Of a DNA stretch of 64,000 nucleotides, positions 220 to 29,574 are shown in pieces. The notes under the pieces are model-generated. The model did no database searches. It was not told the origin of the DNA and saw only the letters and a program-made list of their open reading frames with translations. The position numbers were made by a program, and so were the translations under genes. This DNA comes from Diadema antillarum (taxonomy: Eukaryota): contig NW_027271045.1 in the NCBI RefSeq assembly GCF_040938485.1, positions 868,001-932,000 on the forward strand, written 5' to 3'. Each line of letters starts with the position of its first letter. Positions within the stretch are counted from its first letter, which is position 1.

Positions 220-420
220 ATGCCTCGTAGGAGCAATCCTACTGCTGGCCAGAGCGGCAAAATACTCAGCCCACGGTCATCTGTTTGGCAATTCATGGAA
301 CTGAACCGAGAAACACGACGGGCCAAGTGTCAATTCTGCGACAAGATACTTGCATACACGGGGGGAACGACAAATTTGCGATACCATCTAACAGCCGCGC
401 ATTCGATGCAAGAATTTGAG
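220..420 (+). CDS. ZBED1-like gene A (domesticated hAT transposase), exon 1 of 4: BED zinc finger
   Basis: ATG at 220. Encodes RSSVWQF...CQFCDKILAYTGGTTNLRYHLTAAH (W-x-F, CxxC, HxxxxH BED signature). Ends GAG|gtaatg at 420/421, 201 nt, phase 0. Confidence 0.88.
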
Positions 421-1845
421 GTAATGTACATCTGACAAGTAGGAATCGATTTGACAGGTTAAAATGTTTTTCTACACATCGACTACTATACGGTACAATT
501 CCTATTAAATCCATGCAGATCGATTAAGGTATGAATCACACTGCCTGGGTGGGAAAATTAAAATTCTTAGTCAGTGTACGCTACTAACAAAGTTAGCTAG
601 TACAGTATGTATGTGGAGACTTTCGTCTAAACTGCTAGTGTTTACCGACTCGAGGAACATGTGCTGGATCAGCTACAGTACAAATGGGACATATGCAGTA
701 CACGGATTCATAGCGTTACATACAACTACTAACGTTAGAGCCTCATAGATCTAACCCATGATACAGTACAGTTGTACAGTTGTAATTAAACTGTTCACTG
801 TTCGTTAGTCTGGAGCCTTTGGCCAACGCAGTATACAAGTGCTTCGCACGGCGTCGTCGGGATTGTGGGGGGTCGGGATTGTGGGGGGTGGGGGTGGGGG
901 GGGGTGGGGGTGGGGTGCGTTAAACCGTTGGTGCGAACGCACCCCCACTTCTTATTTATTTATTTATTGTTTTATTTTATTTATTTTTACTTGTCTATAG
1001 CTGATGAAACCCGGAAGTAGAACCAGAAAAAAAGTACCTTCCCCTCCCCTTGGAAAAAGCTGGTGATGCCCCTGTGTAAGCTACATAGAATGTTCTAATG
1101 GCCTTAAAAAAAAAAAAGGAAAAGAAAAAGGAAAGGAAAGAAGAAAATGGGAAATGAAGCTACTCTAGATAAGCACATGAAAAGAAGAATGATGTACAGA
1201 TCAATCCTGTTAGTATAATGAATATAATGAAATTCCTGTTATAACAAAGTGAAAAATGGTCCCAAAATCTAGTTTGATAACTGTTGTTGTGTTCTAAATA
1301 AATTTTTATATAATGCAAGAAAATTGCCAGTCCTAGGACTCGCCATCAGTATAACGTTAGATAGCTGACCACAAATTTATATCACTACCAACAAGATAGG
1401 CCTTGTAAGCATTCAGTATAACTATGATATTGGGCCAAGACAATAAAAGAAGGTTATTCTATTTTATTTTCTATTTTATTATTATTATTTTTTTTTTTTT
1501 GGGGGGGGGGGAGGGCTTTAAAAAAAAATTTCATTGGTGTAAGCCTACATTTGGAGAAAATAGGACAAATGACATTTCTTGAAATTTATATGTCACTGTT
1601 AAATACTAGATCTAAAGTTTTTGAATAATGAAATACATCTTAGGGATTTATTTCTTTTTTTAACTTGGAATGTTCACTTGTACAAATGTTACGTATAGAT
1701 CATTCTTCAAATGAGACAATGTCATCACTGTAAAACTCTTCAGATTTTTTTTTTTTTTTTTTTGGGGGGGGGGGAGGAGGGTACAAAGATATTATTACTG
1801 CATATTTGGTTGATAATTTGGCAATTACATGTACATCTGTACAAC

Positions 1846-2213
1846 CAGAGCTACAACGCATTCTGCGTGAGACTCAAGCATTTTAGGGTCTGTCTCACGA
1901 TCTCACGCATGGCACCCATTTTTCTCACGCATCTGGTGAAGTCTGCAATTTGGGCCAAAAATAAGGAGCATAGCTCAAAGGATTAAAGTGATAGTTGCAA
2001 TTGAAGGTATATTTCCCTTTTACCTTTCAAAATTAGTAAAAAATAGTCACTAAAGTATGCACCAGATCTCATCATTAAGAGCTAATGATTTAAAAAAGCT
2101 CCCTACCATGGGAGGGGGACACCCTCCTCGTTCGCGTGCGCATGCGTGCGAGCGCCGAGACGCTGAGTCATAAAAATCTCACTCATAAAAGTTTTTTGAA
2201 CTTGGCATCTCTG
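1846..2213. mobile_element. MITE with 6-bp TSD (hAT6-like), gene A intron 1
   Basis: TACAAC|CAGAGCTACAAC...CTTGGCATCTCTG|TACAAC: imperfect TIR, perfect 6-bp direct repeat. Confidence 0.75.
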
Positions 2214-2876
2214 TACAACCCTTTTTACCTTAAAAATCAATTACATTACATGTATATTGTATCACAACATCCACACAGGGGTATCCACTCGACATGAAAA
2301 AATTTCCTTTCTTGAAAAGATAACTAGTAAGTACATCATGTCAAGTGGATCACTACAATATGTGGGTGCTGTGATAACATGGCTTTAGTAACTGTAAAGG
2401 TCTATTTGTACCACACATACATTAATGAATATGTATAATCTTTTCAAGAAAAGAAATTTATCAAAGATTCGTAGGAGCTATGTGTAGGGTAATAATACCT
2501 GCTGACTGGAATGGTGATTGTGATTTTTTTTTTTTAAACTGTGATACAATTTCTGTGTGAATCCAACAAGTCCTGAGGTACTTTGTGCAGAATCATTTCA
2601 TCATTAAATCAGCAACTTTGAATTTTATCCTGATGTTATATTCGAGAGAGATTAGGTACATTTGTAGAACTGGTTGATCAACACTGCACACTGGCACTGG
2701 TCCCGATGGTCTGGGACCAGTAAAAATAGAAAAACCTACCCTACCTACTGACAAGGACAGGTGGAACCAATAGAAAAATGGGTTAGTGTGCTGCCCTGGG
2801 TTAATTCATTTCTTCTGCACAAAATTTTGGGAAAAACCCCCAATTTTAGAGATACATGTATTGTAACAGGGATTAA

Positions 2877-3663
2877 CCCTATTCCCACTGGGGGCATTTT
2901 GCCCCCCCTCCCCCCCCCCCCCCCCCGTCGACGTTTAGCGTGATTATTTCGCAACGCGTAATGCTCTTGCTGTGACATTTTATGACTTTTTTCTTTCAAG
3001 TATGGTATCGCGCAAATTTTGAGACCAAATTTGTCGCTCCCAGGCATACCGTTTTGAAGCCATGCCCCTTTGAAAAAAGTTTGTCGACCCAAAAATTGCT
3101 CAAAAACATGATTTTGTGTACAAATCCAATGTAAATTGTGTTTTTGCAATTAATTCATACAAAAATAAATATTTATACTTTTAATGGCTGATAATGATTT
3201 ATTTTAGCCTGATTACATGCTTAAAAAGGTTTCTGCGACAAATTTTGACAAAAAAACAACGAAAACAAAAAGTAAAAAAGAGAAATACATAAGAAATTCA
3301 GTAAACAATAAAATACATAAGAAGTAATTATGAAGCCGAATTTTTGCTTCAATATTATTGTTGAGGATATTGAAAAGAATATGTTCACCAAAAATTAGAA
3401 GTCTTGGAGCTTTATTTTTTTTATTTATAGGCAAATTTTTTTTGCATAAATTAGCATAGATTAATTAATATAGAATACATAAATTAAAATTTGAAAAATC
3501 GAACTATACAGTCTTGTAGATTACATTGGCCTCTACCTTAGTGCAAATTTTCGCGAGGATCGCGTGATCCACGACCGAGATCTGAAGGGGGGGGGGGGGG
3601 GGGGCCAAAAAGGCCCCCCCGTGGTGCGTTCAAGTCCCTCAAAAATACCCGGTGGGATTAGGT
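2877..3663. mobile_element. piggyBac-like MITE (TTAA TSD)
   Basis: TTAA|CCCTATTCCCAC...GTGGGATTAGGT|TTAA. A related, decayed sequence starts at about 37541. Confidence 0.7.
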
Positions 3664-5186
3664 TTAATCTTCTCCAATGTATTGCCAATTTAGGGACAAG
3701 GAATATTTACTGGAGCAATTCAGAGAATTGGAAACTTCTGCTACTAAAACAAATCCCCAAATATGTGAATTGAGTGAACACAGCAATTATGGTCGAACAC
3801 ATTTTAGGGGGTTTGAGGAAATCTGACCATTCGCTCAACAAAACTTATGAATTTGTAAAATTTTTGTGCCACCATCGCTGGATGAGACGTGAAACAGTGT
3901 TTGATGTCACTGCGGAACAGCAGGTATACACCTGTATATAAAGAGACAACATATTTTAATTTTTTTAGTATTATTAATGAAAGAGAATGTTATACAGTTT
4001 GCCTTGCCTCTTTCAGAAAGGGAATATTATTACCCCGACATACAAGTCGTAGTTTGTTCTTTCCATTAAAAAAGAAGTTTTGTGGAATTCTCTTATATCG
4101 ATTGTTGTTCTGCAATGACGTCACAGACTGTTGTAGTCTTCTCATCCAGTGATGGCGACACCAAAACTTTTAAAAATTCATTAACTTCAAAACAGATTGA
4201 TTTCCCTCAAACTTCACTGGTGTGTTCTGCTATTAATTACTGCATTCACTCAATCCACATGAATGAAAAGGTAGGCCCTATCATTCTCCTTTGATGAGAC
4301 TGCTTCCATTTTATTGATTGTGACTATTTCGGTTGTTTGTTCAATTTATTCAACTTGAATATTATGGATTAGCAATCAGGAATGTAATTCAATTTCAGTG
4401 TAAGCTATCCTATAAGTTTAAAATTCAACTTACACACACACATGAGGGTACACGTACACTGGGTGGCAGGTAGCACATTCATATCATTTGAATGTCAATA
4501 TTGGGTTAGTACTGAATGTGCTATGTGGTACCAAGAGTATTATTTTTGTCTTTACAGTATAACCATTTGTTATAATGGTGCAATGTCCCTTTTTCTGCTT
4601 TTGAAAGACAAGCATACAAGTACAATGTGTGTACAACTTGTATATAAGATTGTAGACCTATGAAAATGACAAGGAATCTCTAAGTTAAACACTTAAACTC
4701 CGCATTCAAAGTCAAGTGGCATGAATTGCATCTTTGACCCTTATTGAAATTAAGTCTCAGACAAAAAAGAAAGAAAGAAAGTAAGAAAGACAGAAAGAAA
4801 GGTGTGTGCTAGGCCTAATTGCATCATGTCAAATGAATATCACCAAAGTCAAAGGTTTAACTCCCATGATGTTAGACAGTCTGTAATGAAATATAACCAG
4901 AAGCAAGGCATAATGTAACAGAGATCATTTAGGCTATTTCATACAATGCATTGTGTATGACCTGTTGAACTGCCAACACTAGTGTGATGATCTGGTAAAC
5001 TTGCATGTGTAGTACCTAGCGTGTAAGTTGTTTGTCAAGCAGTTATTAACTTAATCCTGCATGTCATAGAACTCAGCAGAAAGTGAATTAATATTCTGAA
5101 AACCTGCAACCTTTTGTTAGAATAGACTTTGCGTAACTTATGATGAAATTGTTCATGAATTGTATTTGTGATATTTGCCATAACAG

Positions 5187-5660
5187 GTTGTTGGTCCTTC
5201 AGCTAAGGTATTCAAGCCAGGAAAGGTCAAGTCCATTCTTGGAAGCTCATTGCCAGCAGAACGGAAAAAACGTGGAAGGCCCAAAATCAAAGGAGTGAAG
5301 GAGGAAGAAGGCACAGATGGACCTTCGACATCAAATAACCCAACACTGTCTACTGCCAACAACACATCAACTGAGGTTGCCAACCCAGCAACACCGAGTG
5401 CTGTGCTGTCAACAAAGCACCAGCCATTGGGCCTTTCTGCATTCCGTATGCGGTTCAATATGAACAGAAACTTCACAGACAACCAGAATGCCATTGTGCA
5501 TGAAAAACTTCTTCATATGCTTGTCCAGAGCCTGCAACCACTCAGTTTTGTTGAGTCAGAAGGGTTCCAAGGGTTAATGAAATTCTTAGAGCCAGTATAC
5601 ACTCTTCCAGACAAGAAACTGTTACAAGACATGCTGTTGAACATGTATGAAGCTGGCAAG
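5187..5660 (+). CDS. ZBED1-like gene A, exon 2 of 4: AT-hook-like motif, low-complexity linker, hAT N-terminal dimerisation region
   Basis: Acceptor ...ccataacag|GTT at 5187, in frame with ORF 5250-5672. Contains KKRGRPK and LQPLSFVESEGFQGLMKFLEPVYTLP (cf. hAT LQPFSIVEDEGF...LEPRY.LP). Donor AAG|gtaagt at 5660/5661, 474 nt, phase 0. Confidence 0.88.
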
Positions 5661-6824
5661 GTAAGTAATTGAAGTGATACTCATCAGATTTAAGTGAGTG
5701 AAATGATTGATACTAAAACAGCATTTATTAATCTTGTGACAGTCTGTGGAGGTACTCAGAGGAGTCACAGGCAGACACACACACAGACAGACAGACAAAC
5801 ACATGTACACACAAAATCAACAACAAATAAGATCAGCTTGGCTGAGTCTTATCGACAAGTGTAATTGTGTATGCCATTTTTTTTTTGTCTCTTCATTTCC
5901 ATTTCTAGCTAAAGTATGGTATACAACAAATACAATGCATCACTTATGGTCTGAAATTAAGCAATTAGTATTTAAGTCAATGTGAAATGTGAAATAAACA
6001 GGGAACTTAACACTTAAAACTTGGTATGAAATTTCAAACAATGGGAAAGCTGAAGTGAAGGTCTTCTTGTGTAAATCGAATTAACTTTGAACAGATGAAA
6101 ATCATTACATGTATGCTGGGTATTGCAACTTTGAACAATACTGTTTGCAATAAGCATGTTGATATATCAACAGGTAAAAAGTTTTGCCATATGAAGGATT
6201 ATACGTGTATATAAATCATGAATCTTCAAAATTCATAATTTTGTAAACATTTTTCTTGCACTATCGGGGCTTTATTAACCTGTCCTACATGACAGATCAG
6301 AAGAATGTACATATCAATGTACTAAATATGGCTGCTCAAAAAAAAACAAAAAACAAAAGAAAACAAACAAACAAAAACATGTATGAACAAAAAACAAATC
6401 CACACTCTTGTACAATTGTAGGTGTCTGATGCTCAATACAATGTACATAGTTTATGTGAGGCTCTTGGTAACAATATTCTACTGTTCACTAGTACATGTA
6501 ATTGTGTTGTTTTGTTTGTTTTTTAGCACAATGTTTTAGCGACCTGTCTTTGTTTTGGAACAACTAGCATAATACTGTATGTAGCTGGCTGCTTTAATTG
6601 GTAGTGGTTATGTGTAGGCGGGCATGTGGGTGTGGAGCTGAACCCTACAACATACCATTAGCTGCAATGTGTTTTTATCTACTTTCTTAGTACAATTTTT
6701 AAATTGAAGCAAGGCTGTGCAGTATTATTTTTTTTCCTCTTGAAATTCCATTCTTACATATTTACATGTACATACTTTTGTAGAGGGTGCTGTTGTTTGC
6801 AATCACTTTTCATACTCCTTACAG

Positions 6825-7373
6825 GTGAAACTTATGAGCACTCTTGCAGAGGATGCTCCACACTACTCTGTGGTCTACGATTTGTGGAGGAACAATGATC
6901 AAGAATGCTACATGACAGTCATCATCCATTACCTGAATGACCAGTGGGAACGCAAGAGCTGGGTGCTTGGCACTGAGCAGTTAAGCCAACTCCGTGCCAC
7001 AGGAAATGAAATTGGCAACTGCATCAGCAGCCTCCTGCTCATGTACAACCTGCCTCTGCAGGGGCTGGTGGGGACTGTGTACCGTCAAGGCATGCTCAAG
7101 TCTCAGATGGGACGAATCGGCACCCTGTTGGCATGTGAAAGCATGAGCTGTGCTGCTGAAAAGCTGGACATGTGTGTTCAGGCAGCATTTGCCATACCAG
7201 AGATCAGGGATGTGATTGATAAGGCAGGGAAGTTAGCCAACTACCTGATCCACGATGACGGGGCACGCCGCATCCTTCAGGAAATGAAGGAGGTGGATGG
7301 CTTTACTCACCAGGTGGAACTTGCGCAAGATCACAAGGGGTCATGGGTAGCCACTTGCAATATGCTGATGAAG
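6825..7373 (+). CDS. ZBED1-like gene A, exon 3 of 4: RNase H-like core and insertion domain
   Basis: Acceptor ctccttacag|GTG at 6825. Encodes VVYDLWRN...YMTVIIHYLNDQWERKSWVLGT, CAAEKLDMCVQ (CxxH position) and GSWVATCNML (W motif). Donor AAG|gtttgt at 7373/7374, 549 nt, phase 0. Confidence 0.87.
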
Positions 7374-7493
7374 GTTTGTTATTGTGCAATGACAAAGAAT
7401 TCCAGTATCCAAACTTCAAAGTTTAACTCCAGTCAACAAACCAAGAACCATTTTTACCAGTGGGAGGAATTCTAACTGAAAAGAAGAATTTAA

Positions 7494-7873
7494 AGGATTT
7501 GTATAGCTTAGGCCTAGACCTAACTTTGGGTTTCTAACATTTTTTTTTTGTGAGATAATGAGAAACCTTTAATGAAATATGAAAGAATATGTAGTTCCAT
7601 GAGCAATTTAACATTTACTTGATGAAAATTGGTTTTGAAATGGCTGAGATATCCAAAACAGAGTGATCCTAGTAAAAGGTGGGACCCACCTTTTATAATG
7701 AACGCTTTGTTTTACTTTGATTTTGGATGTGTTAGCCATTCCAAAACCAATTTTTGAAAGTTTGAATTCCTGTTAGAATGGTATGGTCTGTACTATAAAC
7801 AAAAGTGGTTTCGTGATATCTCACAAAATATTAAAAGCCCAATTCTCATCTCCACCAATACTATACCATCCCT
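7494..7873. mobile_element. TTAA|AGG...CCT|TTAA MITE (Kolobok-like), gene A intron 3
   Basis: Termini TTAA|AGGATTTGTATAG and CTATACCATCCCT|TTAA. Collinear with the copy at 45383-45765. Confidence 0.78.
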
Positions 7874-8377
7874 TTAAATACAAGTCTGTTAGGCTAGTAC
7901 TTAGTTATTGAAAATATGCATGTTTATTTCAAGTTACATTTTGCCACAACTGCAATGGCTCAATTTCTGAGAACTCGATTCATTTTGATATTAGATTGAA
8001 TCTTTTTAAAGGGTTTTTGGTAACAATCTCATTTGAATACATTTTGGAATGAGGAGCATAACATTAAAAGTAATGTGCTTGAAAAGTATCAGCAACTAGA
8101 AGTTAAAAAGAAAATTGATTAGACCATTGTGCATCCTGTTTTGCCAAACAATTTCTGTTGATTCTGCAGAAACCCCAAAAATATGTGGGCCAAACTGAAC
8201 ACTATACAAGTGTATAATTTCCACTCAGTTAACATGAAAATATTGCAAACACACTCATTAATGCCTATTCTCTAAGTGAATGCATGTTGTTGAATATGAC
8301 ATTGTAGGCCAGAAGTTAAAATCTATATTCTCTGGACATGTTACATAGTGTCGCTATAACATTTCTCTCTGTTGCAG

Positions 8378-9169
8378 TTGATAGCCCTCAAGGAAGAGAT
8401 TGAAAAAGTCAGCGATCAAGACATCAAGAACAAACAACTGTACCTCAGTGAAGAGAAATGGGCTCTCATTGAGTTGTTGATGAATTCCCTCCAAATCCTG
8501 AAGGCAGCACTGACAGTTATGAGCGAGGACAAGACAGGCTCTGTGTCATGTCTTCTGCCTGTGGTCCACAGCATTCTCCAGCATTGCGAAGATTCCAGTC
8601 ATGCCAAGAACTCACCCATGGACAACTTCCTGAAGACCATTGGCAAGGAAACCCGGGAAAAGTGGGATCTCACTGCCATTCTGCCTTCATCCATACCGAT
8701 GCTTGCTGCTCTGCTTGATCCAAGATTCAAGAAACTAAAATTCATTGCTGAAGAGGACAAAGGAGATGTGTTTGATGCCCTCAAGGGAGTTCTTGGTACC
8801 ATTAAAGTTGCAGGAACTGATGGCACAACCAACTCCAACTCTCAGGACCTATCCCCATTCCTGTGTCTGTTCGGAGGCACTGAGGAATACACCCAGGAGC
8901 GGCAGGACACTGACAGTGAGATTACCAACTACACCAACTTTCCTATGCTAAGACATGAGTGCTGTCCACTGGACTGGTGGCGGGTCAATCAAGGCCGGTT
9001 TCCAGAGTTGGCTAAGCTGGCCAGACAGTACCTGTCAGTACCAGCTATTGCACTGCCAGTGAAGGAAATCAAAGCTGGTGCTTGGCAGCTGGATATGAAA
9101 AGGGGTCTTCTTGAAGTAGAGGCTGCAGGACCCCTGATCTTCATGAATCATAACTGGGCATTGTACTGA
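8378..9169 (+). CDS. ZBED1-like gene A, exon 4 of 4: hAT C-terminal dimerisation (hATC) region, stop codon
   Basis: Acceptor ctctgttgcag|TTG at 8378. Encodes LSEEKWALIE, AALLDPRFK, PLDWWRVNQGRFPELAKLARQYLSVPA and LIFMNHN; TGA ends at 9169. Spliced ORF is 67+158+183+263 = 671 aa with no internal stop. Confidence 0.9.
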   Translation: MIALKEEIEKVSDQDIKNKQLYLSEEKWALIELLMNSLQILKAALTVMSEDKTGSVSCLLPVVHSILQHCEDSSHAKNSPMDNFLKTIGKETREKWDLTAILPSSIPMLAALLDPRFKKLKFIAEEDKGDVFDALKGVLGTIKVAGTDGTTNSNSQDLSPFLCLFGGTEEYTQERQDTDSEITNYTNFPMLRHECCPLDWWRVNQGRFPELAKLARQYLSVPAIALPVKEIKAGAWQLDMKRGLLEVEAAGPLIFMNHNWALY

Positions 9170-9943: not shown

Positions 9944-10686
9944 TACTGTATACGCCATATATTTCGCGAGTCTAAATTTTTGCGAATCGGGACTTCCCAA
10001 CAATTTCGCGAGTGGTTAAATTCGTAATCGTGGAGTCTTGTACTGAACGGAGAAATGTATATGCGTATGTCACATTCATATCATATTTTCACGTGTTTTT
10101 AACTCTTAATGTGCCATGGTGGAAACCACCTGTGTGCCACGTTATTCTGAGACACGAAGGTAGTCATGCTTTGAGAAAGAATTCTGTTTTTCCAATTTGT
10201 ATAACTTCTACAAATTTCTGTTAAGATAGGCATAATAGTAGGCAAAGTTAAAGAGGAATGCCAAGCTTTGTTTCGATATGAATTGTATGACGACTCTATT
10301 TTCAATTTTTCTTTTAATGACCAGGTGCTACATTACTATAAAGGCATGACTTTTGCACATTAAACATTGACAGAAACTTAGAATGTACGAGCAAATCTAA
10401 TTGGGAACATGGCTTGATAGTCGATCACCACATAGAATGCAAGCCGTATATGAGAGGAACAAAAGCACGAGAAACACTTTCATTGTGCCGCGGGATTAGC
10501 AGTAATTAGCGGTTTATCGATCGGTCTTGGCGGCTTTGTTTGTTGAGCAGAATATGCGAAGTTGGCACGCCGTCGACTGAGTCGGATGTGCGATGGCACA
10601 TAAAGAGTTAATTTCGCGAATAGCAGGTGATTCGCGAAAATAAAAACCACGCAAAATATGTGCAATGTACAGATGTACATATAGTA
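9944..10686. mobile_element. TA-flanked TIR element with TTCGCGA subterminal repeats, superfamily uncertain
   Basis: Left TACTGTATACGCCATATATTTCGCGAG. Right end has repeated TTCGCGAA and CGCAAAATATG...TACAG; the exact right boundary is uncertain. Confidence 0.5.
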
Positions 10687-11129
10687 CATGTATGCATAGT
10701 GATCCCATGCCATCTCTCTATCTGAATTATCAGAAGCAGGAAGAGGAAAAAATATGCTAGGCTCAGACCCGCTGTTGTCCCTCTCTATCCCCATTATCAG
10801 TGATGAATAACCAATGACTGTGCTTTCAATGTTTTCTTATAAACCATGTGATAAGAAACACGAATGCCCTCCGGTGTACTTAAATCTTTGAACATAATCA
10901 TTTGATTTCTTTTAGAGATACACTTCTATACTATTTGATATACTCATTGAAAAACTTTCCATCTAATGAAACTAGTGGCAAAAAATGGAAGAATATTTTT
11001 TTGGAATGCATGCAGCTGTTTTTCTGATTAGTAAACATTGATGTGTAGGCCTACATCATGTAAAAGATTAAAGCTAAAATAATTAATGAAATCAGTGTGA
11101 TCCCACCAGGCAACAACAGCATAAAACAG

Positions 11130-11790
11130 TTGAATCATGATCCTGCCTGGCAACAACAACATAAGACAAGTTGAATAATGCATGTACTTGTGCCAATGTT
11201 CAGAAAAATAACAAATGCATCTAACAGTGTTTAGTAGATTTTCTTTTTATTTTGTTCATTATCATCGTATGCTGCATATCGCAAATGAATATTTTCATTC
11301 TCTCTGAATGGTCTAATATATGAGGTAGAGCTAGGCGTAAAAAGGATCATGAATTCTACCCTGTCTTGTAACTTTCTAGAACACATACAAAATGCGATGA
11401 GGTTTTCCAAAGAAAAATGAAGAATGCATTTTCAACCCCTCCTGGGTCATAAATCCTTAAAGATTGTAGCCAGAATAATTCATAAAATCATCGCAATCCT
11501 CCTGGGCACCAACAGTGTAATTTACCCAGCAAGTTGAATAACGCATGTTGCTCTACTCGTGCTGATGTTTAGAAAAGTAACAAATGCACTTAATACTGTA
11601 CAATCTATGTTAATTATCATTTTACAATGTATTTCACAAATGAAAATTTGCATTCTTTCAGAATAGTTCAATACACAAAGAAAAGATAGATGTTGAAAGT
11701 GTCATGAATTCGACCCTGCTGTGTACTTTTTAGGAGCAAATGGACAACATATCCCCAAAAGATTGGGGAAGAAAAATAGAAAATGCATTT
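11130..11790. repeat. Diverged tandem duplication, unit about 360 bp
   Basis: Blocks recur in order about 360 bp apart: caagttgaataa, agaaaa(a/g)taacaaatgca, tcatgaattc(t/g)accctg, aatgcattt(t)caacccct. Confidence 0.7.

Positions 11791-13603: not shown

Positions 13604-13607
<4 letters not shown>

Positions 13608-13648
<41 letters not shown>
13608..13648. repeat. (TA)n microsatellite
   Basis: Direct reading. A second (TA)n tract lies at about 47148-47176. Confidence 0.95.
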
Positions 13649-13652
<4 letters not shown>

Positions 13653-18588: not shown

Positions 18589-19329
18589 ATGAGCGATAAA
18601 ATGATAGATGCGATAGACAATCAAACTATGGAGAGTATTATACTGCAGAGAAATAATAGTCGGCGATCGGATGTTTGGCAGTTCATGGAACACAACGAGG
18701 AGTCTCGGTATGTCACTTGCAAATTGTGCGGATTTCGTCTAACCTCCTCGTCACGAAGCGGTACATCTAACTTGAGGAATCATTTAATGAATCGACACTC
18801 GGATGTGTATCGCCCCGCTAAAATACCGGATCGTGCCAAACGAAAGTACGAGGGTTGTGATCGCGATGTTGAGGATTCACATCCTGTTGGTCTCGATGAC
18901 GCATTGGGCGTTGATACCTCAGACGAAAGCGGATGGCAGAGCCAACAAACCACTCTCCGATCGAGGAGTTGCGTCGGTGACGAGCCTGCTGCTGCTGGTC
19001 AACGGCGGAGTGAACAGCACAGCAACGGCAACACGTCGAAGGGGAGCGCGCGACTCATTGGTATCAAGAAAGAGAAGGTTGGAAAAGAACCGAATCAGAA
19101 TGAAGCGAAGAAGAAAGCTCAGACAAATAAGCTGGCAACCATTTCCAAGGACAAAGGCAATGATAAAACAGCGAAGAGGCACTGGTGCTCTGCTCCACGC
19201 TCTCGAGCCATCACCAACCTGATTTTTAGAATGGTCGTGGAGGATTTATTACCATTGTCCGTGACAGAGGGAACAGGATTGCGTGGATTAGTTCATGGTC
19301 TGGAGCCAGGATATGACTTCCCTTCCAGG
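18589..19329 (+). CDS. ZBED1-like gene B (domesticated hAT transposase), exon 1 of 3: BED finger, linker, N-terminal dimerisation region
   Basis: ATG at 18589. Encodes RSDVWQF...CKLCGFRL...GTSNLRNHLMNRH and MVVEDLLPLSVTEGTGLRGLVHGLEPGYDFPSR. Donor AGG|gtaaaa at 19329/19330, 741 nt, phase 0. Confidence 0.88.
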
Positions 19330-19912
19330 GTAAAACCAATATAGAATTACCACCACCCGTAACCTTGTTGATAGTTATAGTTACCTAAAATACTTGCATC
19401 TGAGTCTCCGAAGTCGAATAGATGTTAAGTTTGAACACTTTTAGTAGGCCGTATTTACAAGTGTCGGAAAATCTTGATCGTGATCATCTGGTCTGAATGT
19501 AACTGCGACAGCCGCCACACTGTGTGGCGGCTGCGCCGTGCTCCCATAAAAGATCTTCATGTTGAACAAACGGGTGCCTTTGCGGCGCTATATTTCCTTA
19601 ATTTTTCAACAGAAACTACTAGGAATACTTACATGGGTCGATGAAACCTAAATGACTATCATCGGCGACTGTTTGATGCATTTCATTGCTTGTGATGCAC
19701 AAAATGATGTCTTATAAGCAGCTCACCGATGTTCACAGAATTCACAATCACTTGCACAAGCGCACAGAATACTTGAACTAACATAAGCGAAACTGCGGGG
19801 AAGCCGCCAGGACCGCGCCTGGCGGCGCGGTCTCCGGGGCTAGTCTGAATGCAGCGACGACACAGCGGTTTTTTCTACATGGTGTCATTGAAATTGAAAA
19901 GCTAACGGTTGA

Positions 19913-21012
19913 AGGACAAGTTCACCTTCAGTTCAGAGACATGTGGATTGAGTGAATGCAACAATATTTATAGAACACATCAGCAATAGTTTGAGGAAAA
20001 TCGGACAATCAGTTTAAAAGTTATGATTTTTTTAAGTTTCTGCTTAGTCACTGCTGGATGAGAAGACTACCACAGCTTGTGATGTCACATGTGTACAATG
20101 ATATTAAGAAAGTATGAGGAAAATTCAAGATATTTTCCCTTTTCTCGCATAATAAAAGACCGCTTCAATTCCCTCTTTTAGAAGGCAAGGGGAATAATAA
20201 TGTAATATTACCCTTAACATACGTCAGTGACAAGTCGAGGAAATGTGCACCTTTTTCAAAAAGTAAAATTTTGTGAAATTCTCTTTATATTTCTCTTATA
20301 TCGTTGTACCACTGAACTCTATAGTGGAAGGGGCGCTGTGCGCACTTGGCGCGCACTACACACCGAAAAGCAACTACGCTCGTGTTGCACTGTGGGTAAA
20401 AGCTTGAAGCCACCGGAAGTGCTGGCCGGTGGTGGCCATTTTGGGACTTTGCTATGGGGCACCAAAAAGGTGCCAAGAATCACATGGCTATTTTGTTACA
20501 AAATGAGTAATTTTGAATTCAGTCATTTCGTTGAAGAAATGTTCACTTTTGTCAAAAAACCAGTTGTTTTGTTAGGACATGTTCATTTTGTCGACTAAAG
20601 AGCCATTTCGTAATGAAATAGCCCATGCGATACTTGGCGCCCCATGATTTACACCAAAGTGACTTTCCACTGAGGAACGTGCCAAAGCGTCTTTGTGCAC
20701 CACAATAGCGTAGAGTAAAGTGGGCGGGGCCTAAAGGTGGAGTCCTAAAATGGCAGCGCCAACTAAAGCACTTGCGGTGGCTTCGAGCACTGCGCGTAAC
20801 GTCACTTCCAATATAGAGTTCAGTGCGTTATACGCATGTGACATCATACACTCTAGTAGTCTTCTCATCCAGCAGTGACTGTGCATGCTAGCTTAAAAAT
20901 TCATAACTTTTGAACGGATTGTCCAATTTTCCCCAAACTTTCACTGATGTGCTCTACAAATACTGCATTCACTCACTCCACATGTACAAGTATATGAAGG
21001 TGGACTTGTCCT
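19913..21012. mobile_element. Kolobok-like MITE with long (about 190-bp) TIRs, carrying a nested element
   Basis: ttga|AGGACAAGTTCACCTTCA...TGAAGGTGGACTTGTCCT|TTAA. A family member without the nested insert lies at 36976-37540 and a decayed one at about 3790-4265. Confidence 0.8.
20310..20825. mobile_element. Nested TIR element with near-perfect 8-bp TSD (hAT- or P-like)
   Basis: CGTTGTAC|CACTGAACTCTATAGTGGAAG...CTTCCAATATAGAGTTCAGTG|CGTTATAC. Confidence 0.7.
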
Positions 21013-21240
21013 TTAAAGTTTGTTTTTCCTCTTTTCCTCGGCCAAGTCTTGCGTTAGCAGTTGTAACGTTAGCTTCAAAGTGGTTGAACGTGTGCGCGAG
21101 TACGTGTTGCCACTTATATCTTTCCCTGAGTCTTTCTGTTCTATCTTTTCTTTCATTTTCAGGAAGAATCTGTAGGCCTATAGTAGGCTATAAATTTTGC
21201 TTTCCTTTTTATCAATTATTTCATTGTGGTTTTCCTCTTG

Positions 21241-21542
21241 CAGAGACTCCAACCCCAAGCACCTTCTGATCTGGAGATTCTCCCACCTGAAACCCCTAGC
21301 AAACGGGAGACTCGAACTTGATGTGTGCGAAGCGCGAAATTTCTTGTGGCGGGGTCCAGCTCTACGGTTCTAGATGCTATTTCATGTTATCTAAGGCTTA
21401 TTTTTCAACATACGATGACCCTAAGTACGAAATCATTTCAAGCGGGAGAAATTGAATCTCAAGCGGGAGAACAGGAGATTTTGCAAAAATGGGCTTTCGG
21501 CGGGAGATCTCCCGTCGAAAGCGGGAGAGTTGGAGTCTTCTG
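21241..21542 (+). mobile_element. MITE with 6-bp TSD (hAT6-like), copy 1 of a close pair
   Basis: CTCTTG|CAGAGACTCCAAC...GTTGGAGTCTTCTG|CTCTTG. Highly similar along its length to 31586-31888 in the opposite orientation. Confidence 0.85.
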
Positions 21543-22040
21543 CTCTTGTCTAACTTTCTCAATTTCCTATGTAACTGTACTTTCTGCCTAATTGTTCTGT
21601 GTTTCCTTCATGGGTTATTTTCCCTCCAACTACAAAGGGTTTTTCCTTTCTAAATTCTATTCTTTCCAATACCTTTTTCTTATGTGCAGTTCTAATGAAT
21701 CATTTTCTTCATTTCCTTTTCAACCTGTATAATTCCTTCCTAATCTTTGCCTTTAATAATCCAGTTTTGATTCATCTCTTCTTCTAAGTAGACCCTATGT
21801 TTTTCAGTTTTCAATCTTCATTTTTTCTCTTTGCTTTCTTCTTTTCTTTTCAAACATACATGTATCCATCTCTCCCTTGCTTTCCTGTAATAATATAATG
21901 CAAGTTTCTCTTTTTTCTTTCCTTTCATTATCTGTTAGTAAACTATTTTCTAAACCTTTTGTTTCATTTTTCCAGGTTTTGTTAATATCTTTTCTTTCAT
22001 TTCCTTTTCCTAGCCTAAAGGCTTTAGGCCTAGACCCTCT

Positions 22041-22737
22041 ATATGTGACCGTGCACCTCAAAACAAACAAAAAGTCGCCAGACATGAATTTTTAGTTAAG
22101 ACCATATTCTGAAAGAGCAGACTTTAAGCTTTAAAATGATGTATAACTCAAATCAAATGGACTCTTCTAACCTATCTGAATATTGGAAAGAAAGCACAAA
22201 CTCAGGAAAAGTGTGAACTGAGAAAAGAGGCTCTGAAGTACAGTGCCTATTCAAGCGCTTAATCTTTACCAAACCGTGCTGGCTGTGCGATGAATGGGAC
22301 AAAAAACAGGAAGTAAACCACCAGAGTAACAACAATGAAGGGATTATCAGATTAAAATGAAATTAAGCATGCCTCATTAACACATTCTGTCCGTAATTAA
22401 TGCCAACTTTCAAAGCAGTAGCACTATTCTTTCAAAAGTTATTAGAGTTGAAAGTGAAGAGTGTGGACAAGGTTTTTCAGAAATGAAAAAGGGATTCTAA
22501 AGACACACCTAATCACACTATTCTACCAAAAATGTTCGAGATAAACTGCTAAACAAACACACTTTCCTGCCCGTTTTATGAAACCAAATTTTAGCATAAT
22601 GTAAAAGAAGACCCGCTCTTTCAGAAAATATGAAAAAGTCAAGTTCGGCTAGGTTGACCCATTTCACTTATTTTCAGTCCTCACGCAAAATCAGTGTGTG
22701 CGACTTTATGTTCGTTTTTAGGTGCACGGTCACATAT
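22041..22737. mobile_element. TIR MITE flanked by ATAT (Sola1-like target)
   Basis: ATAT|GTGACCGTGCACCTCAAAACAAACAAAAAGTCGC...GCGACTTTATGTTCGTTTTTAGGTGCACGGTCAC|ATAT. A truncated relative lies at about 25940-26525 in the same intron. Confidence 0.72.
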
Positions 22738-23325
22738 TCTTTCAGCCTTGTCGTATAACCACATTTTTCACAATCTTCTTTCATGCACACACATACACGT
22801 ACACACACGTGCATACACACACACAAAACACGAACAATCTCAATCCTCACTCAATCGCTCCCATGACTCGGTACAAGCTGAGAGAAAGGCAGAAAAAGTA
22901 TTATCTTTTTAAAGATACCATAGAATAACTTGCTCTGATCGCTGTGAGATAGCTACATTCAGGTCAAGTGCAGTGCTTGCAGCTATGACCATGTTTTGTA
23001 ACCCGTTCCGCGCTGTCTGCTCGTAATGCAGTTAAATCGCAGAGCAAACTACATTGTAGTTGCGATCGACATATTCCAACAAGTGTATGAAGTGTCAAAT
23101 GGTGAAAAATTCCTTTTTTACTGGACTTGAATCTTACTCAGATGCAAATATTCGAGGCTGTTGGGTATTTAGACTAGAGTGAGTTCGCGCATGTTTGGAG
23201 ATCATTTGACAAACAGGTGCGAAAGTACACTAGTGTCTAGAGATGGTAGAGTTCTAAAAGATTTAACAGCGGCACCCTGTGTATGTGGTTGTTACTAGTG
23301 TTGGTGTATAGTGTAGAATGAAAAG

Positions 23326-23500
23326 CAGGGGCGGATCCAGGAATTCCGTAAAGAGGGGGGGGGGGGGGGTTTACAAAATTAAAGGGGGGGCGCACGCACC
23401 CCTCCTCTCATTTTTTTCTTTTTATTTCTTTTGTTTCAACAAAAAATAAAGGGGGGGGGGGGGCGTGCGCCGGTTGCGGTCCTCCCTGCATCCGCCCCTG
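23326..23500. mobile_element. GC-rich MITE with 5-bp TSD (hAT5-like)
   Basis: AAAAG|CAGGGGCGGATCCAGG...CCTGCATCCGCCCCTG|AAAAG. Related decayed copies at about 16534-16693 and 59409-59929. Confidence 0.75.
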
Positions 23501-23836
23501 AAAAGTTACACCATACACTCTGAAAATAATAAAAACAAGACAAAAGACAAACTCGTAAACAAACTAACAAAAAACTAAACTAGACATGGTTCCATTACAC
23601 ATCCTCTTTTGCGAACATGACACATGACTGAAATTCACAGATATTACCTGTCTATAGTACATGTATAAACTGAGGGCAGGGTGGCGATCTCAAGGTACCC
23701 TTTTAGAGCTGCGCAAATAACAATGCATTGGACGCACTATAGTAACAGCGTTTTTTCACTATGGGGATTCAAAATCAGCAGGGTGGCCATGGGATTCAAA
23801 ACTGCAGTTTTTACGCCATATTTGAGGCAAAACTTA

Positions 23837-24406
23837 AGCCCTTTTTACACTTGTGTTTCTTAGCCCCATACTTTCTCTGACCCAGGACTATCGTTAGTCC
23901 CGTACCAATTTTTTCAGCTTTTTACACTCGCCAATAAATCCTGTACTAAGCTCTTGTCCTGGGATAAGGAGAAAACTGACCTTTTGACACTCGTATTTCT
24001 TAATCCCGTACTTTCCAAACCACATGAATATTCATGATTACGCTGTGCACTGTACAAGTACACGCACACACAGGCAGCACTTGATTACCTCGTTTCTGAT
24101 TGGTCAGTGGGGGGTCGGACTTCGTCTCCCCGTCGCTTAGCCCCGGATTATTTTATCGTTCTGTTTACACTCGCTTGCTTGGCACCGCAATTGCGGGGTT
24201 AGCACCGCAATTGCGATGCTAACCCTGCTTTTTTGCAGGGCCAGATAGTACGGGATTATCGGTGGGGCTAGCCCACTTTGGCAAAAACAAGTGTAAACAG
24301 AAAGTGGGCTAAAGGAAAGTCCGGTACCAACGATGGGGCTAAGGCCCCCCCTTAGCCCCACTGTTGGTACGGGACTAAGCAAAAATTTGCAAGTGTAAAA
24401 AGCCCT
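23837..24406. mobile_element. PIF/Harbinger-like MITE (TTA TSD)
   Basis: TTA|AGCCCTTTTTACACTTG...CAAGTGTAAAAAGCCCT|TTA, with internal repeated ttagcccc and gtcccgtacc motifs. Confidence 0.78.
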
Positions 24407-26916
24407 TTAGGTGATGTCATATACTTTCGGAACAAATGAGCTAGAGGTCCTTAGGGTGGTATTTTAACTAAGTAGTACCCTCAGAATAGCCACAGGTAGC
24501 TAAAAGGCCATGGAATGGTATGGCAAGATTGATGGGGGGGGGGGGGGGGGGGGGAGTAGATCTAATGACATTCCAAGCAAGTAAAGTTGGAAGTGATCAA
24601 ATTCTGGTGAATAACGCAAGATACACATTGTTTGTACACTAGACTGGTCTGCTAGTAAGTACATTTTAGCTTATTTCCAATCAATAGTGGAAATTTCAAC
24701 CCAAGTGGAAAGTATTCATCAATGTTGACTTTCATGTCTTCGCTCAATGTGCACATTTGTACAACTCCCTCTTCTCAAACCTCTCATTTGTGATCACAGT
24801 GTACGCTACCTGCACAATTTGAAACTGAAGTTAGCTCCAACCTCTGTATCTAATAGTTGGCGACATGCCTACATTGTATCTTTCATATAATGTAACCAGT
24901 TCCATAAAGCCACAAATTTCTCCATGCATGAAACTTTCATGAATTTTGCAAGATTCCTGAAAGTACATTTTAATGTAAAGTGCATGCAGAAGATTTTGTC
25001 TATCCCAGCTATACACCACATTGTACCATGGCATGCAATAAAAGTGCCAGTTGGTAATTACGAATTTTCAAAAATGTCATGCCAGGTACAGGCCATTGGC
25101 TCCAGTTCATGAAAGTTTCATGCCACAAATGTTCCTGGCTTTTAATAGAGTAACTAAAAATCAATATAAAGTTTTACACTTCAATCCAGAGTTCAGATGT
25201 GTGTGTGTGTGGTGTGTGTGTGTGCGTGTGACTACCTTTGTCTGTCTGTGTCTGGGTGTGTCAATGTGCTTGGAATTGCATTTCTTAACCATCTTCATTC
25301 AACATGTCATAATCATTTGTGTATTGATATTTAACTTCTATTAGATAGCTAACTTCAGTTTCAAATTCTGCGGGCAGGCATGAGTGTACACTACAGTACA
25401 ATCATGAATTAGAGGCGTACGAAAGGGGTGATTGTTTATGCCAAATTTTTGCCAACTAAATCACAATGTTCCACAGTACATTGAAAGCGCCACAGCTGTA
25501 ACTGTGTCATAAAATTTACATCACAACAAAACTTTCAGTTTTCTATAAAACTTTGCCGTACTGCATTTCTATTACACCAGGTACAAGTTTCTTTTTTAAG
25601 TCACATACATTGTAGCTTTGAAAACAAAATGTTTCCAAAAGCTGTCATGCATTGTGGTCTCAGAATAATGTGGTGGCACACAAAGATATAAACCAGAAAT
25701 GCTCTTACAGGTATTGTAGTAAGTGAAATGTACAGTAAGTACATTCGTATGAGTACATGCACATTCCAGTTTGTTTCTGCCAGATCGAGGGTTACCTCCT
25801 TAGGGTCAGTACCAAATTTGGTGCCAGTTTTCACATTTTGATCTTTATGAAAACATATGGTACTGTCAAATTTTCTTCAAATTTAGCAAACATTATTGCC
25901 AGTGTGATAGAATATTTTGCACTACATCACAAAAAACTACCAAAAAGTTGCCAAACATGGAGTTTTAGTTAAGAGTAGATTCTGAAAGCCCTGAGCAGAC
26001 TGTATGATGATCTATAATTGGACTTTCATTGCCTATCTATGCAAAGGAAAGAAAATGCACATTCTGGAAATGTGTTTGCTGAGAAAAGAGGCATTGAAGT
26101 TTGGGGTATTCGAGTGCTTTTAAAACCTCACTGTGCTGTGCTATGTGCAATGAATGGGACAAAAAACAGGATGTAAGACTCTGTAGCAATCACAATGAAG
26201 GGATTATTAGATTATTAAACCAAAACTTCCTCCACTCATTGAAAGCACATTTTATTAATGACCGATATCAACTCTAAATGCAGTAGCACCATCCTTTCAA
26301 AAATGAGGAGTGTGTAAAGGGTTTTTAAGAAATGAAAGGGGGCCTCTAAGACATCACTAATCACACTATTTTAAAAATGAAAAGATGTTCTGGAAAAGTG
26401 CAAAAAAACATAATTTCCATTCATTTTATGATCCTAAACTTCAGATATAAATGTATAGAAGAATTACTCTGTCAGAAAATATAGAAACGTGAAGATTGAC
26501 CAAGTATGTTGACCCACTTCACTTACCAGAAATGTTTGCGGTCATATTATTTTTGTGAATTTCATGATACCCAATATTTGTGATAGTGGCAATTCGTGAA
26601 AATTTCAGGCTACAAAAAAGACTATTGGCTCCACTTTGCGAAAAATTTAATGCCACCAAAATATCTTGCTTTACTATTTTGATTCCTCACGTAAAACTAT
26701 CGTAGGGAGTGCAACCATTTTGTTGGTTTTGTGATGCCCAGTCACTTGAAAATTGTAGAAATAGACATGATGCCCTCCTGGAGGACCATCAAGTTTGCTA
26801 CATCATGTATGTTCTTAATGATAATGATAAGTCTGCCAGAATGCATGGAAAGTGAACTTGTGATATTCAGGCAAGTGCTTGACTGACTGGTCTCTTGTTT
26901 TCATTGTAAACAATAG

Positions 26917-27117
26917 GAAGAACTTGAGGATCGTCTGTCTGAGAAGCTGAAAGAAGGGCGACAAAAACTTGGTGAACAGATTTCAACTGATGAGCAGAGA
27001 ATTGGTTTAACTTGCACTCTATGGTCTGATTATCAAAGCAAGAACTACATCACTCTAACAGCACACATCATCACAAGTGAATGGAAGAGCAAGATGTGGA
27101 CTGTGGGAACAATCCAA
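26917..27117 (+). CDS. ZBED1-like gene B, exon 2 of 3 (absent from the ORF track)
   Basis: Acceptor ...gtaaacaatag|GAA at 26917. Hand translation EELEDRLSEKLKEGRQKLGEQISTDEQRIGLTCTLWSDYQSKNYITLTAHIITSEWKSKMWTVGTIQ fills the missing hAT segment (cf. LTTDxWTS...Y.TLTAH.I...W). Donor CAA|gtgagt at 27117/27118, 201 nt, phase 0. Confidence 0.88.
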
Positions 27118-28380
27118 GTGAGTATACAGGGAATAAAAGAGAATATCATGAAATCTAATCTGTTACCACTTAATAGAAAAATCAGTCATGTGATGGAACT
27201 AATGTGATGATCCAATGAATTTGAATTTTCAATTGTCAATCTGGGAAGTAGAGTTTCGTTGTTAAGATGACACATGTCACAACATAGCTTTGTTTGAACA
27301 CAACATGTAATGTAGGGTTTTAGGAAACACAGAACTCAAGCCAAATAGCAATGGACCAAACAACACATTTAAAAACAAACATTTAACTTGTACAGCTGTG
27401 TATACACAAATTTAGTATGTGAGAAATTTAAGAGGATACTCGGTCATAATCAATTTAAACAATTCAGTCGACTACAACCTTCCATTTTAATATACATGTA
27501 CTTTAATATTTGACAGTTCTGAATGTGTTGAAAATTCCATGTGATCTACATGTATAAAGCCTACTTTCTCATAAAGTACAATGTGAAATAAAATATCATT
27601 ATCATTATTGCCTTCATTATTATTAACATTATTGTGCAGATTTTGATGTATTTATGTTTGATTACTTGCATTTGTTGGTTGACTCTCACTTTCATTTTGT
27701 TGCCTCCTCTTGGTACACCTTTTTAGGGCTTGCCGTTTGCTCAGTCCCCCCCCCCCCCCTTACTGTTGCTATTTCACTCTTTTTTCTTTCTTTATCTCTC
27801 TGTTTTTCCTTATCTTGTTTGATGTTGCCTCCCTATTCATCCTTTTCCTTCAATGGTTGCCCCCTTGGTCCTTAGGATCATTACTGACCCTCCTCTGCCT
27901 TTTGTCTGTCCACCCTCCTGCTCTAATTCCCCCTCCTTTTACCTGTTGGGCTCCTTGCCCATGACCTCCTACCCTCTCCTTTTGTTTTCTTTGTTCTGTG
28001 TCCCTAGCCTGTCCCTGACTGTTCTTGTTGTGTGAAGTCCTTATTGATTATGTGATTGCTTTCACTGCCTGTTCGCCATTTTGCCTCTGACGAATCAAAA
28101 GCTCAGGACCCTTTTGACTCCATTTTACTCCATTGGCTCGCCACTATTGGATAAGCAGTTTTCAGCAGCTTTTTTTGCTGCAAATAAAAATCAAAACGGG
28201 TAACTGCAGAAGAAAGATGGCAAGGTTTATTCACATATATGCAAGAAATGACCCCAAATATACCATCATGTATTGTATTAAGTCATGTATAGTACTTCAA
28301 TACATGTAGGGTTGATGTAAACTAGAGAAGTGGTGCAAGTCTTAAAGTTAACCCTTTCACTTTTATTTTCCTTCATTCAG

Positions 28381-29574
28381 GTATTTGAGAATGCCACTGA
28401 TCAGGATGTAGCCCAACAGATCCAAAATCTGTGCCAAGAGTGCAACATTCCCATTGACAGTGTTGCTGGTATAGTGTTTGGTACCGATGGCAAGCAGTCC
28501 ATTCCTGACATCTCAGAAAGGCTGAAGATTCTGAAGTCTATCTGCTCCTTTCTAAATTGGGAGTGCAGACCCTGTGCAGGGGAAATGCTCGAAATATCTG
28601 TACAAAATGCTCTGAGTATCCAACCTGTTGCAGAACTTATTCAGGCAACAGGACGTCTGATCATCCACTTGACAATCAACAAGGATCTGAATGACAACCT
28701 TTGCAAGGTGCTGAAGAGATTCAAGCAGTCAGCAACACTGAGCATGTACAATTGCACCAATGGCTGGCTCTCAGTATGTGACATGTTTGTCAAGATTTCA
28801 GAGATGCACAAGGCAATCATGGAGGTTCTTGATGAAAAAAATGAACATAATCTAACTGATGGCCAGTGGCAGTTACTGCCCGAGTTGGTAGAAGCTTTGC
28901 AAAGTATCAAAGCAGCTGTTGCTGTCATGAGTGACTCGAGGAACAAATCTGGATCATGTTGGTTGCCAGTGATGCAGGGTGTTCTCCAGCACATTCAGTC
29001 CAGCGATGGCAAGGAGATATCTGAAGAAGCCAAGGCCTTCCGTGATGCTCTGAAAAGGGAACTTAACATTCGCTGCGAACTAGATGAGATTCTTCCCAGC
29101 TCCCTTACGATGCAAGCATCTGTCATTGATCCACGCTTTCACCACCTTCGTTTCCTCTCAGATGAGGACCGCACCCCAGTCATTGACGAACTCAAGAAAC
29201 GGCTTGTTGGAATGCCCACAGAAGAGCAGAAGGGTAATGATTCTAATGCCCAGGAGGAATCTCCATTCTTCAAGCTCCTTGGAGAGGATGAATTCAACAA
29301 GAAGATGGTCAAGCCAGAAGATGAAATTGATCTCTTTCGGCTCGAGCGTCCAGTTTCTCGCGAAACAGATCCCCTTAACTGGTGGCGGCTTAATGAGAAA
29401 CGATTTCCTGGTCTTGCAAGGCTTGCTAGGGCAATCCTGTGTGTGCCAGCTGCAGCCTCGCCAATCAATAAGACTTCAGAGAAAGTGGCCAGTTTGGAGA
29501 ATCGCAGACGCCTAGAAGCTGCTCATGTGGATGCTCAACTCTTCCTCCACACAAACTTGGAACTTTTTTTGTAA
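28381..29574 (+). CDS. ZBED1-like gene B, exon 3 of 3: core, insertion domain and hATC region, stop codon
   Basis: Acceptor ttccttcattcag|GTA at 28381, in frame with ORF 28330-29574. Encodes PCAGEMLE, NGWLSV, LTDGQWQLL, SVIDPRFH, PLNWWRLNEKRFPGLARLARAILCVPA and AHVDAQLFLHTN (cf. human ZBED1 AHVDEQVFLYEN, recalled). Spliced ORF is 247+67+397 = 711 aa. Confidence 0.9.
   Translation, partial: VFENATDQDVAQQIQNLCQECNIPIDSVAGIVFGTDGKQSIPDISERLKILKSICSFLNWECRPCAGEMLEISVQNALSIQPVAELIQATGRLIIHLTINKDLNDNLCKVLKRFKQSATLSMYNCTNGWLSVCDMFVKISEMHKAIMEVLDEKNEHNLTDGQWQLLPELVEALQSIKAAVAVMSDSRNKSGSCWLPVMQGVLQHIQSSDGKEISEEAKAFRDALKRELNIRCELDEILPSSLTMQASVIDPRFHHLRFLSDEDRTPVIDELKKRLVGMPTEEQKGNDSNAQEESPFFKLLGEDEFNKKMVKPEDEIDLFRLERPVSRETDPLNWWRLNEKRFPGLARLARAILCVPAAASPINKTSEKVASLENRRRLEAAHVDAQLFLHTNLELFL

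Follow-up and report, generated by a model that had tools for sequence, protein, structure and literature searches.

Two neighbouring genes on the forward strand of a 64,000-nucleotide stretch of the sea urchin Diadema antillarum genome (contig NW_027271045.1, positions 868,001 to 932,000; the whole stretch is called the window below) encode proteins related to hAT transposases. Both gene A (671 amino acids (aa)) and gene B (711 aa) are real genes. Together with a third paralogue, A2, they very probably make up a three-member echinoid family of domesticated hAT (Ac/Hermes-type) genes, immobile and kept by selection as host genes, older than the main split among urchins and likely to encode DNA-binding regulators. 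As a case of transposase domestication this is clean but unsurprising, because the kind is well known: the genes are automatically annotated ZBED1/ZBED4-like genes and not the undescribed system suggested in a first-pass annotation of the window. No publication about these genes turned up in a literature search. That annotation is partly confirmed here, its observations being largely right with one motif error and its interpretation right in outline.

The tandem arrangement of A and B is conserved between species. In Lytechinus variegatus (L001) the A orthologue (143–4736) lies upstream of the annotated B orthologue (10001–17389) on the same strand, and in S. purpuratus (L002) A (10001–16553) is again followed by B (19751–24128) on the same strand; intron positions are identical among orthologues. 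In both Diadema and Lytechinus the pair is nested antisense within the annotated span, or intron, of a NUB1-like gene, which lies on the minus strand and encodes ubiquitin-like and UBA domains, so that the synteny check at NUB1 proposed by the first-pass annotation gave a positive answer; in S. purpuratus the A-B tandem adjoins a UBA-bearing gene fragment. The same locus (NUB1-like gene, A and B) is found with the same neighbours on two Diadema contigs, JBFRCO010000087.1 (L004, corresponding to window 8589–39576) and JBFRCO010000157.1 (L005), and the annotated NUB1-like gene (597 aa) spans beyond both ends of L004. A and B each occur once per contig and the B proteins of the two contigs are identical. 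A draft Diadema assembly measures 1.73 Gb against a haploid estimate of 0.70 Gb and has 84% duplicated BUSCOs, and the two contigs are most likely uncollapsed redundant haplotypes, not dispersed copies.

Both genes are kept by selection. Between S. purpuratus and L. variegatus, the ratio of nonsynonymous to synonymous substitution rates (dN/dS) is 0.14–0.19 for A and 0.19–0.24 for B, and it stays below 0.25 in every domain: 0.009 in A and 0.10 in B for the BED finger, 0.21 and 0.08 for the RNase H core, 0.08 and 0.11 for the hAT C-terminal (hATC) region, and 0.22 and 0.23 for the linker. Transcripts come from a single RNA-derived Logan run (SRR6173504), which contains both an A orthologue (P0007) and a B orthologue (P0003), each as an uninterrupted full-length open reading frame (ORF) with untranslated regions (UTRs) on a 2.9-kb contig. 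Judged by their sequences, these contigs appear to be spliced mRNAs of a fourth echinoid.

These results bear on the suspicion that A and B are not host genes but annotation artefacts, or transposon copies that are decaying or were immobilised recently. Such a suspicion is not idle, given that foldbacks resembling miniature inverted-repeat transposable elements (MITEs) fill intron 1 of gene B, and that a Lytechinus pictus hAT protein with an intact DDE triad and CxxH motif (P0045) is also named 'E3 SUMO-protein ligase ZBED1-like'. Because the intact P0045 has the same name, the NCBI name is no evidence either way, be it on domestication versus mobility or on ZBED1 orthology. Against decay or artefact stand the conservation of synteny and introns among orthologues of three species, the low dN/dS, the apparently spliced mRNAs of the fourth species, and window copies that are free of stop codons, frameshifts and flanking terminal inverted repeats (TIRs). 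The claim that TIRs are missing holds for gene B, which no inverted repeat was found to bracket in a search of the window; the left flank of gene A, with only 219 bp before the ATG in the window, is too short for a judgement on TIRs or target-site duplications. We find the decaying-copy reading scarcely credible and take it to be refuted by the synteny and selection results, whereas the claim that A and B are selected, immobile host genes is upheld.

Gene models and predicted protein fold

Gene A comprises four exons (220–9169) whose GT-AG junctions, all in phase 0, yield an intact 671-aa ORF in the splice-junction model, and gene B comprises three (18589–29574), likewise GT-AG and phase 0, found by a brute-force search for GT-AG junctions (Table 1). 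The two intact spliced ORFs described earlier are thereby confirmed at the level of exon models. The gene B model reproduces exactly the 711-aa Diadema protein in NCBI (P0001, 'E3 SUMO-protein ligase ZBED1-like'), to which the largest ORF of the gene is 100% identical. The NCBI protein for gene A (P0186, 517 aa) corresponds to residues 155–671 of our model; it begins at an internal methionine in exon 2 and is without the BED-finger exon and the linker. The omitted exon shares 87–93% identity with exon 1 of the orthologues in Lytechinus and S. purpuratus, and the 671-aa model is backed by orthologues and by an mRNA contig, and the 517-aa annotation is corrected accordingly.

Both assembly gaps lie between the stop codon of A (9169) and the ATG of B (18589) and break no coding exon. 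Nor do they hide one, because the N-terminus of the B protein aligns with its orthologues from residue 1. The gap nearer to B may conceal promoter or 5'UTR sequence of that gene, and the A-B distance is uncertain across the gaps. The 5' ends of both genes are CpG-rich, as noted in the first-pass annotation: the observed/expected ratio there is 1.1–1.5, compared with 0.48 for the window and 0.19–0.39 for the downstream exons. This pattern would fit a germline-expressed gene with an unmethylated 5' end and a methylated body. The MITE-like foldbacks of gene B intron 1 (19909–21016, 22041–22737 and 24806–25377) have long terminal inverted repeats of 22–120 nt with 83–95% complementarity. The linker of gene A contains a basic stretch, RKKRGRPK (5262–5285), with an AT-hook-like GRP core, which is only loosely conserved in orthologues.

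Pfam detects zf-BED and Dimer_Tnp_hAT (PF05699) domains in both A and B, the latter with E 2e-8 in A and 1e-11 to 4e-12 in B, above the gathering score in each case. The four zinc ligands of the BED finger are invariant in seven family members. Gene B matches the Hermes transposase directly (E 8e-14, HMMER), and the C-terminal region also matches Hermes in sequence (E 1e-13). In gene A, exon 2 gives a weak DBD_Tnp_Hermes match in Pfam and its model matches the Hermes N-terminal domain. The core exon of gene A, searched by itself against Pfam and PDB sequences, gave nothing useful, and structure prediction was needed to demonstrate the fold. The AlphaFold model of A (aa 155–671) has a mean predicted local distance difference test score (pLDDT) of 91.6 and a predicted template-modelling score (pTM) of 0.89, and matches Hermes with E 1e-14 to 1e-16. 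The model of full-length B has a mean pLDDT of 81.4 and a pTM of 0.72, with pLDDT below 50 at aa 88–169, and matches Hermes with E 1e-13 to 3e-15. Superimposed on Hermes chains, the two models align over ~540 columns with template-modelling scores, normalised by target, of 0.56–0.70 (0.63–0.70 for most chains). The predicted structures, taken with the domain matches, show that A and B keep the whole transposase fold, consisting of BED finger, helical DNA-binding domain, RNase H-like core, alpha-helical insertion and hAT dimerisation region, and the BED-plus-hAT architecture assigned at first sight is borne out for both. Look-alikes in the ESM Atlas were generic BED/hAT clusters only.

Table 1. 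Features of genes A and B and of their surroundings in the window
Feature	Position	Strand	Description
Gene A exon 1	220–420	+	start codon and BED zinc finger; Pfam zf-BED E 1e-10; donor GT at 421
Gene A BED motif RSSVWQFME	274–300	+	
Gene A BED motif CxxC	328–339	+	
Gene A BED motif HxxxxH	385–402	+	
Gene A exon 2	5187–5660	+	low-complexity linker, then N-terminal helical DNA-binding domain of the hAT fold
Gene A exon 3	6825–7373	+	RNase H-like core; YDLW 6876–6887, GTVYRQG 7071–7091, CAAE 7149–7160
Gene A exon 4	8378–9169	+	all-alpha insertion domain and hAT C-terminal dimerisation region; PVKEI 9056–9070; stop codon 9167–9169
Assembly gap (N)	13789–14024		intergenic, between A and B
Assembly gap (N)	17757–17898		intergenic; ends 690 bp 5' of the gene B ATG
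Gene B exon 1	18589–19329	+	BED finger, disordered acidic/basic linker, start of helical DNA-binding domain
Gene B BED motif RSDVWQFME	18664–18690	+	
Gene B BED motif CxxC	18718–18729	+	
Gene B BED motif HxxxxH	18781–18798	+	
Gene B exon 2	26917–27117	+	first strands of RNase H-like core; LTCTLW 27007–27024, D1 codon ACT 27016–27018
Gene B exon 3	28381–29574	+	rest of core, FGTDG 28477–28491, CAGE 28573–28584, insertion domain, hAT dimerisation region
Gene B exon 3, 3' part		+	PINKT 29461–29475; stop codon 29572–29574
NUB1-like host gene exons	39138–45289	−	conserved with Lytechinus (tblastx blocks)
UBA-domain exon of NUB1-like gene	39270–39401	−	E 4.5e-7

State of the catalytic motifs

Catalytic positions are numbered after Hermes, with D180 as D1, D248 as D2, E572 as the catalytic glutamate and H268 as the histidine of the CxxH motif. 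The motifs read earlier in A (YDLW, GTVYRQG and PVKEI) and B (LTCTLW and PINKT), as well as the RSxVWQFME start of both BED fingers, are as described. D1 is Asp in all A orthologues and Glu in A2; in B it is Thr in Diadema, on both assembly contigs, and Asp in the S. purpuratus, Lytechinus and SRR6173504 orthologues. D2 is lost in A, where Diadema has GTVYRQG and the other A orthologues have N for Y followed by RQG, none with an acidic residue, and it is lost in A2 (AVVNRQG). The motif error concerns this position in B, which had been thought to have no D2 in register: the FGTDG motif aligns in HMMER with FVTDRG of Hermes, which contains D248, is placed by the model at the end of strand beta-4, and is conserved in every B orthologue.

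The canonical catalytic glutamate is absent from every A, A2 and B member. Its place is taken by Lys in Diadema A, opposite Hermes E572 in the HMMER alignment, and by Ser in the other A orthologues, by Asn in A2, and by Asn in Diadema B and Cys in the other B orthologues. At the CxxH position the shared CxxE substitution is confirmed, with CAAE in A and A2 and CAGE in B, and its glutamate is found in every A, A2 and B protein. The tryptophans equivalent to W182 and W319 are conserved. The full D180/D248/E572 triad plus H268 is present in no family member, and cut-and-paste transposition is therefore not expected. H268 is an active-site residue in Hermes, where its mutation causes a severe defect, and the CxxH motif of Kat1 is needed for hairpin formation (PMC4763223).

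Several points weigh against reading the family as selected host genes with a regulatory rather than a catalytic role. Expression is shown in another echinoid, not in Diadema. Synonymous divergence from Diadema is saturated (YN00, NG86), and Diadema comparisons were not used in estimating selection. DNA binding, oligomerisation and a regulatory role are argued by analogy. A stretch of five C in the L. variegatus A orthologue (L001:4400–4420) contains a 1-nt frameshift, which would count here if it were a real lesion; it is probably a long-read assembly error, because the frame downstream is 95% identical to the L. pictus protein, and it may explain the absent gene call there.

The remaining points concern the core of B. 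B orthologues of camarodont urchins (S. purpuratus, Lytechinus) and of the SRR6173504 species retain both aspartates and both hairpin-related tryptophans, and in camarodonts the RNase H core is the most constrained region, with the lowest dN/dS of the B domains, implying that this core does something selectable. The constraint echoes the puzzle of conserved triad and catalytic-domain residues in ZBEDs raised by Hayward et al. (PMC3606216). The B core might have a residual metal-binding or nicking role, but this is unlikely, and it is contradicted for the genes of Diadema. In a more specific form of the idea, B-type proteins, at least in camarodonts, would keep a nuclease or metal site in which the invariant CxxE glutamate replaces the canonical glutamate beside D1 and D2, an arrangement favoured by the location of H268 in the Hermes active site. 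We judge this form very improbable: Diadema B has Thr at D1 on both contigs, D2 is absent from all A and A2 proteins, and we know of no precedent for a CxxE glutamate as a stand-in.

Origin of the A, A2 and B paralogues

The third paralogue, A2, is represented by proteins of 625–636 aa in Diadema (P0184), S. purpuratus (P0163) and L. pictus (P0182). A2 has one extra intron. Its S. purpuratus copy (L003) is flanked by an ANAPC3-like and a JmjC gene, ~9 Mb away from A and B. Three intron positions are common to A and A2; B has two others, none of which it has in common with the A lineage. An exhaustive HMMER search with gene A exon 4 against 1.84 billion representatives returned, above the hAT background, only the urchin A/A2 and B clusters, and four of its matches scored at or below 1e-30. 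A and A2 relatives were also among the matches listed in a word search with a profile of the family alignment, which was not used to argue absence elsewhere. Short top matches that had been considered as echinoderm orthologues (P0010 and P0012–P0024) were rejected, since all keep SERxF and are ordinary transposase fragments. The nearest intact hATs include P0147, P0037 and P0055.

A and A2 are sisters of B, and the three form one clade with a Shimodaira-Hasegawa approximate likelihood-ratio (SH-aLRT) support of 99 in a 76-row tree and an ultrafast bootstrap/SH-aLRT support of 100/99 in a 47-row analysis under LG+C20 with posterior mean site frequencies (PMSF). The single origin of A and B claimed in the first-pass annotation is thus upheld. 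The competing account is that A and B are two separate domestications of adjacent, closely related copies of one transposon family, and it draws on the lack of any intron position common to both genes, on the two aspartates that were still intact when they split, and on a catalytic glutamate replaced differently in each lineage. We think it quite unlikely. The A, A2 and B proteins are strongly monophyletic with respect to all sampled hATs, their same-strand adjacency is most simply a tandem duplication, and the shared His-to-Glu change is an unusual state, which among 86 aligned hATs occurs outside the family only in gar ZBED1.

The order of events is less simple than the earlier proposal that catalysis was lost and the gene then duplicated. 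The presence of D1 in A and in non-Diadema B, and of D2 in all B, implies that both aspartates were still present at the A/B split, which speaks against a complete loss beforehand. Given these intact aspartates and the different glutamate replacements (K or S in A, N in A2, N or C in B), the one lesion that the paralogues clearly inherited from a common ancestor is the His-to-Glu change, and to that extent the proposal stands.

Under the single-domestication history that we favour, an ancestral, probably intronless transposase gene would have been immobilised and would have lost its active-site histidine (CxxH to CxxE). This ancestor would then have been duplicated in tandem inside an intron of the NUB1-like gene, giving A and B; the two copies would each have acquired introns of their own, and A would later have given rise to A2. 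All of these steps would precede the split between Diadema and the camarodonts, because each paralogue has a Diadema orthologue. Echinoid time trees place that split ~200–250 Myr ago.

Relation to vertebrate ZBED genes and probable function

In the best trees the clade nearest to the urchin family contains the ZBED1/ZBED4-like proteins of jawed vertebrates (gar, bichir, sturgeon, arowana, carp, stingray, chimaera and birds). This raises the possibility that one early-deuterostome domestication gave rise to both the echinoid family and the jawed-vertebrate ZBED1/ZBED4/ZBED6-like clade, making A and B (co-)orthologues of ZBED1/4. Both data sets give a best tree in which these clades are sisters, with support of 99/96 in the careful 47-row analysis, and the CxxH histidine is lost in both; the gar protein (Atractosteus spatula ZBED1, P0034) even has CAGE. 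In the 76-row tree, however, support for the join is only 9.8, so that the phylogenetic check proposed in the first-pass annotation is answered for the unity of A and B and answered inconsistently for their link to vertebrate ZBED1/4. When each of the two long-stemmed clades is analysed without the other, they join the tree at different points, neither with support. The data do not reject an alternative placement (log-likelihood difference 9.15, approximately unbiased test p 0.08), which makes long-branch attraction between two fast-evolving inactive lineages plausible. The ZBED1 genes of Polypterus and the stingray Hypanus have no NUB1-like neighbour within 10 kb (two loci with short flanks), the coding region of fish ZBED1 is intronless, and the exhaustive exon 4 search found no intermediate relatives outside urchins. 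Hayward et al. (2013) did not find ZBEDs outside jawed vertebrates (PMC3606216). We regard a common deuterostome origin as possible, though doubtful.

Whatever their origin, the two groups resemble each other in several respects. Like the urchin proteins, vertebrate ZBED1/4/6-like proteins have one BED finger and a full hAT body with hATC and are host genes under selection, and in ZBED1-like proteins of fish, shark and bird the CxxH histidine is replaced by N, R, E, D or Q. The glutamate at this position is invariant in urchins and variable in vertebrates. Since CAGE is found in gar ZBED1 and N, R, D or Q takes the place of His in other vertebrate ZBED1-like proteins, the His-to-Glu change either arose at least twice or is variable among vertebrates. 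Vertebrate ZBEDs have E or H at D1, keep D2 and in some cases keep the catalytic E, whereas the urchin members have D at D1 (with the exceptions given above) and have all lost the catalytic E. The urchin genes contain introns, in contrast to the examined fish ZBED1 coding region, and synteny is not shared.

Other hAT proteins provide further points of comparison. The urchin proteins share with Hermes (Musca domestica) the fold and the W182/W319 equivalents, and the family differs from Hermes and active hATs in its incomplete triad and missing H268, in the lack of TIRs bracketing B and in its single-copy, syntenic, intron-containing loci. Kat1 of Kluyveromyces lactis (PMC4763223) is likewise a domesticated hAT transposase kept by its host, but its catalytic residues and CxxH are intact and it remains able to cut DNA. 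Functional parallels come from DAYSLEEPER/SLEEPER of angiosperms (PMC3499209) and Drosophila DREF, which are also domesticated BED and hATC proteins with degenerate cores that act as DNA-binding regulators, although they stem from independent domestications in other kingdoms or phyla.

In A and B the BED finger is intact and very strongly constrained, the hATC is conserved, the core is conserved yet catalytically incomplete, and the linker is disordered. If the proteins work like ZBED1/DREF, ZBED6 and DAYSLEEPER (PMC3606216, PMC7471704, PMC3499209), the BED finger would read DNA and the hAT C-terminal region would make dimers or higher oligomers; A and B may then act as sequence-specific DNA-binding proteins, with a likely role in the regulation of transcription or chromatin. 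The more specific proposals of the first-pass annotation, that A and B form a heteromer or repress MITEs, lie outside the evidence presented here.

The urchin genes add an invertebrate-deuterostome case to the hAT transposases recruited as host genes, a family of three members, two of which lie in tandem inside a NUB1-like gene, retained since before the Diadema-camarodont split. If the single deuterostome domestication were true, the origin of ZBED1-type genes would be older than the jawed-vertebrate ancestor to which Hayward et al. (2013) traced it, by well over 100 million years, and losses in the intervening lineages would be implied. Sea urchins are a strong system for gene regulatory networks, and what a BED/hAT regulator pair does could be tested in them directly. 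The invariant CxxE, the constrained but nominally dead core of B and the possible link to vertebrate ZBED1/4 bear on why domesticated hATs conserve residues of their catalytic domain.

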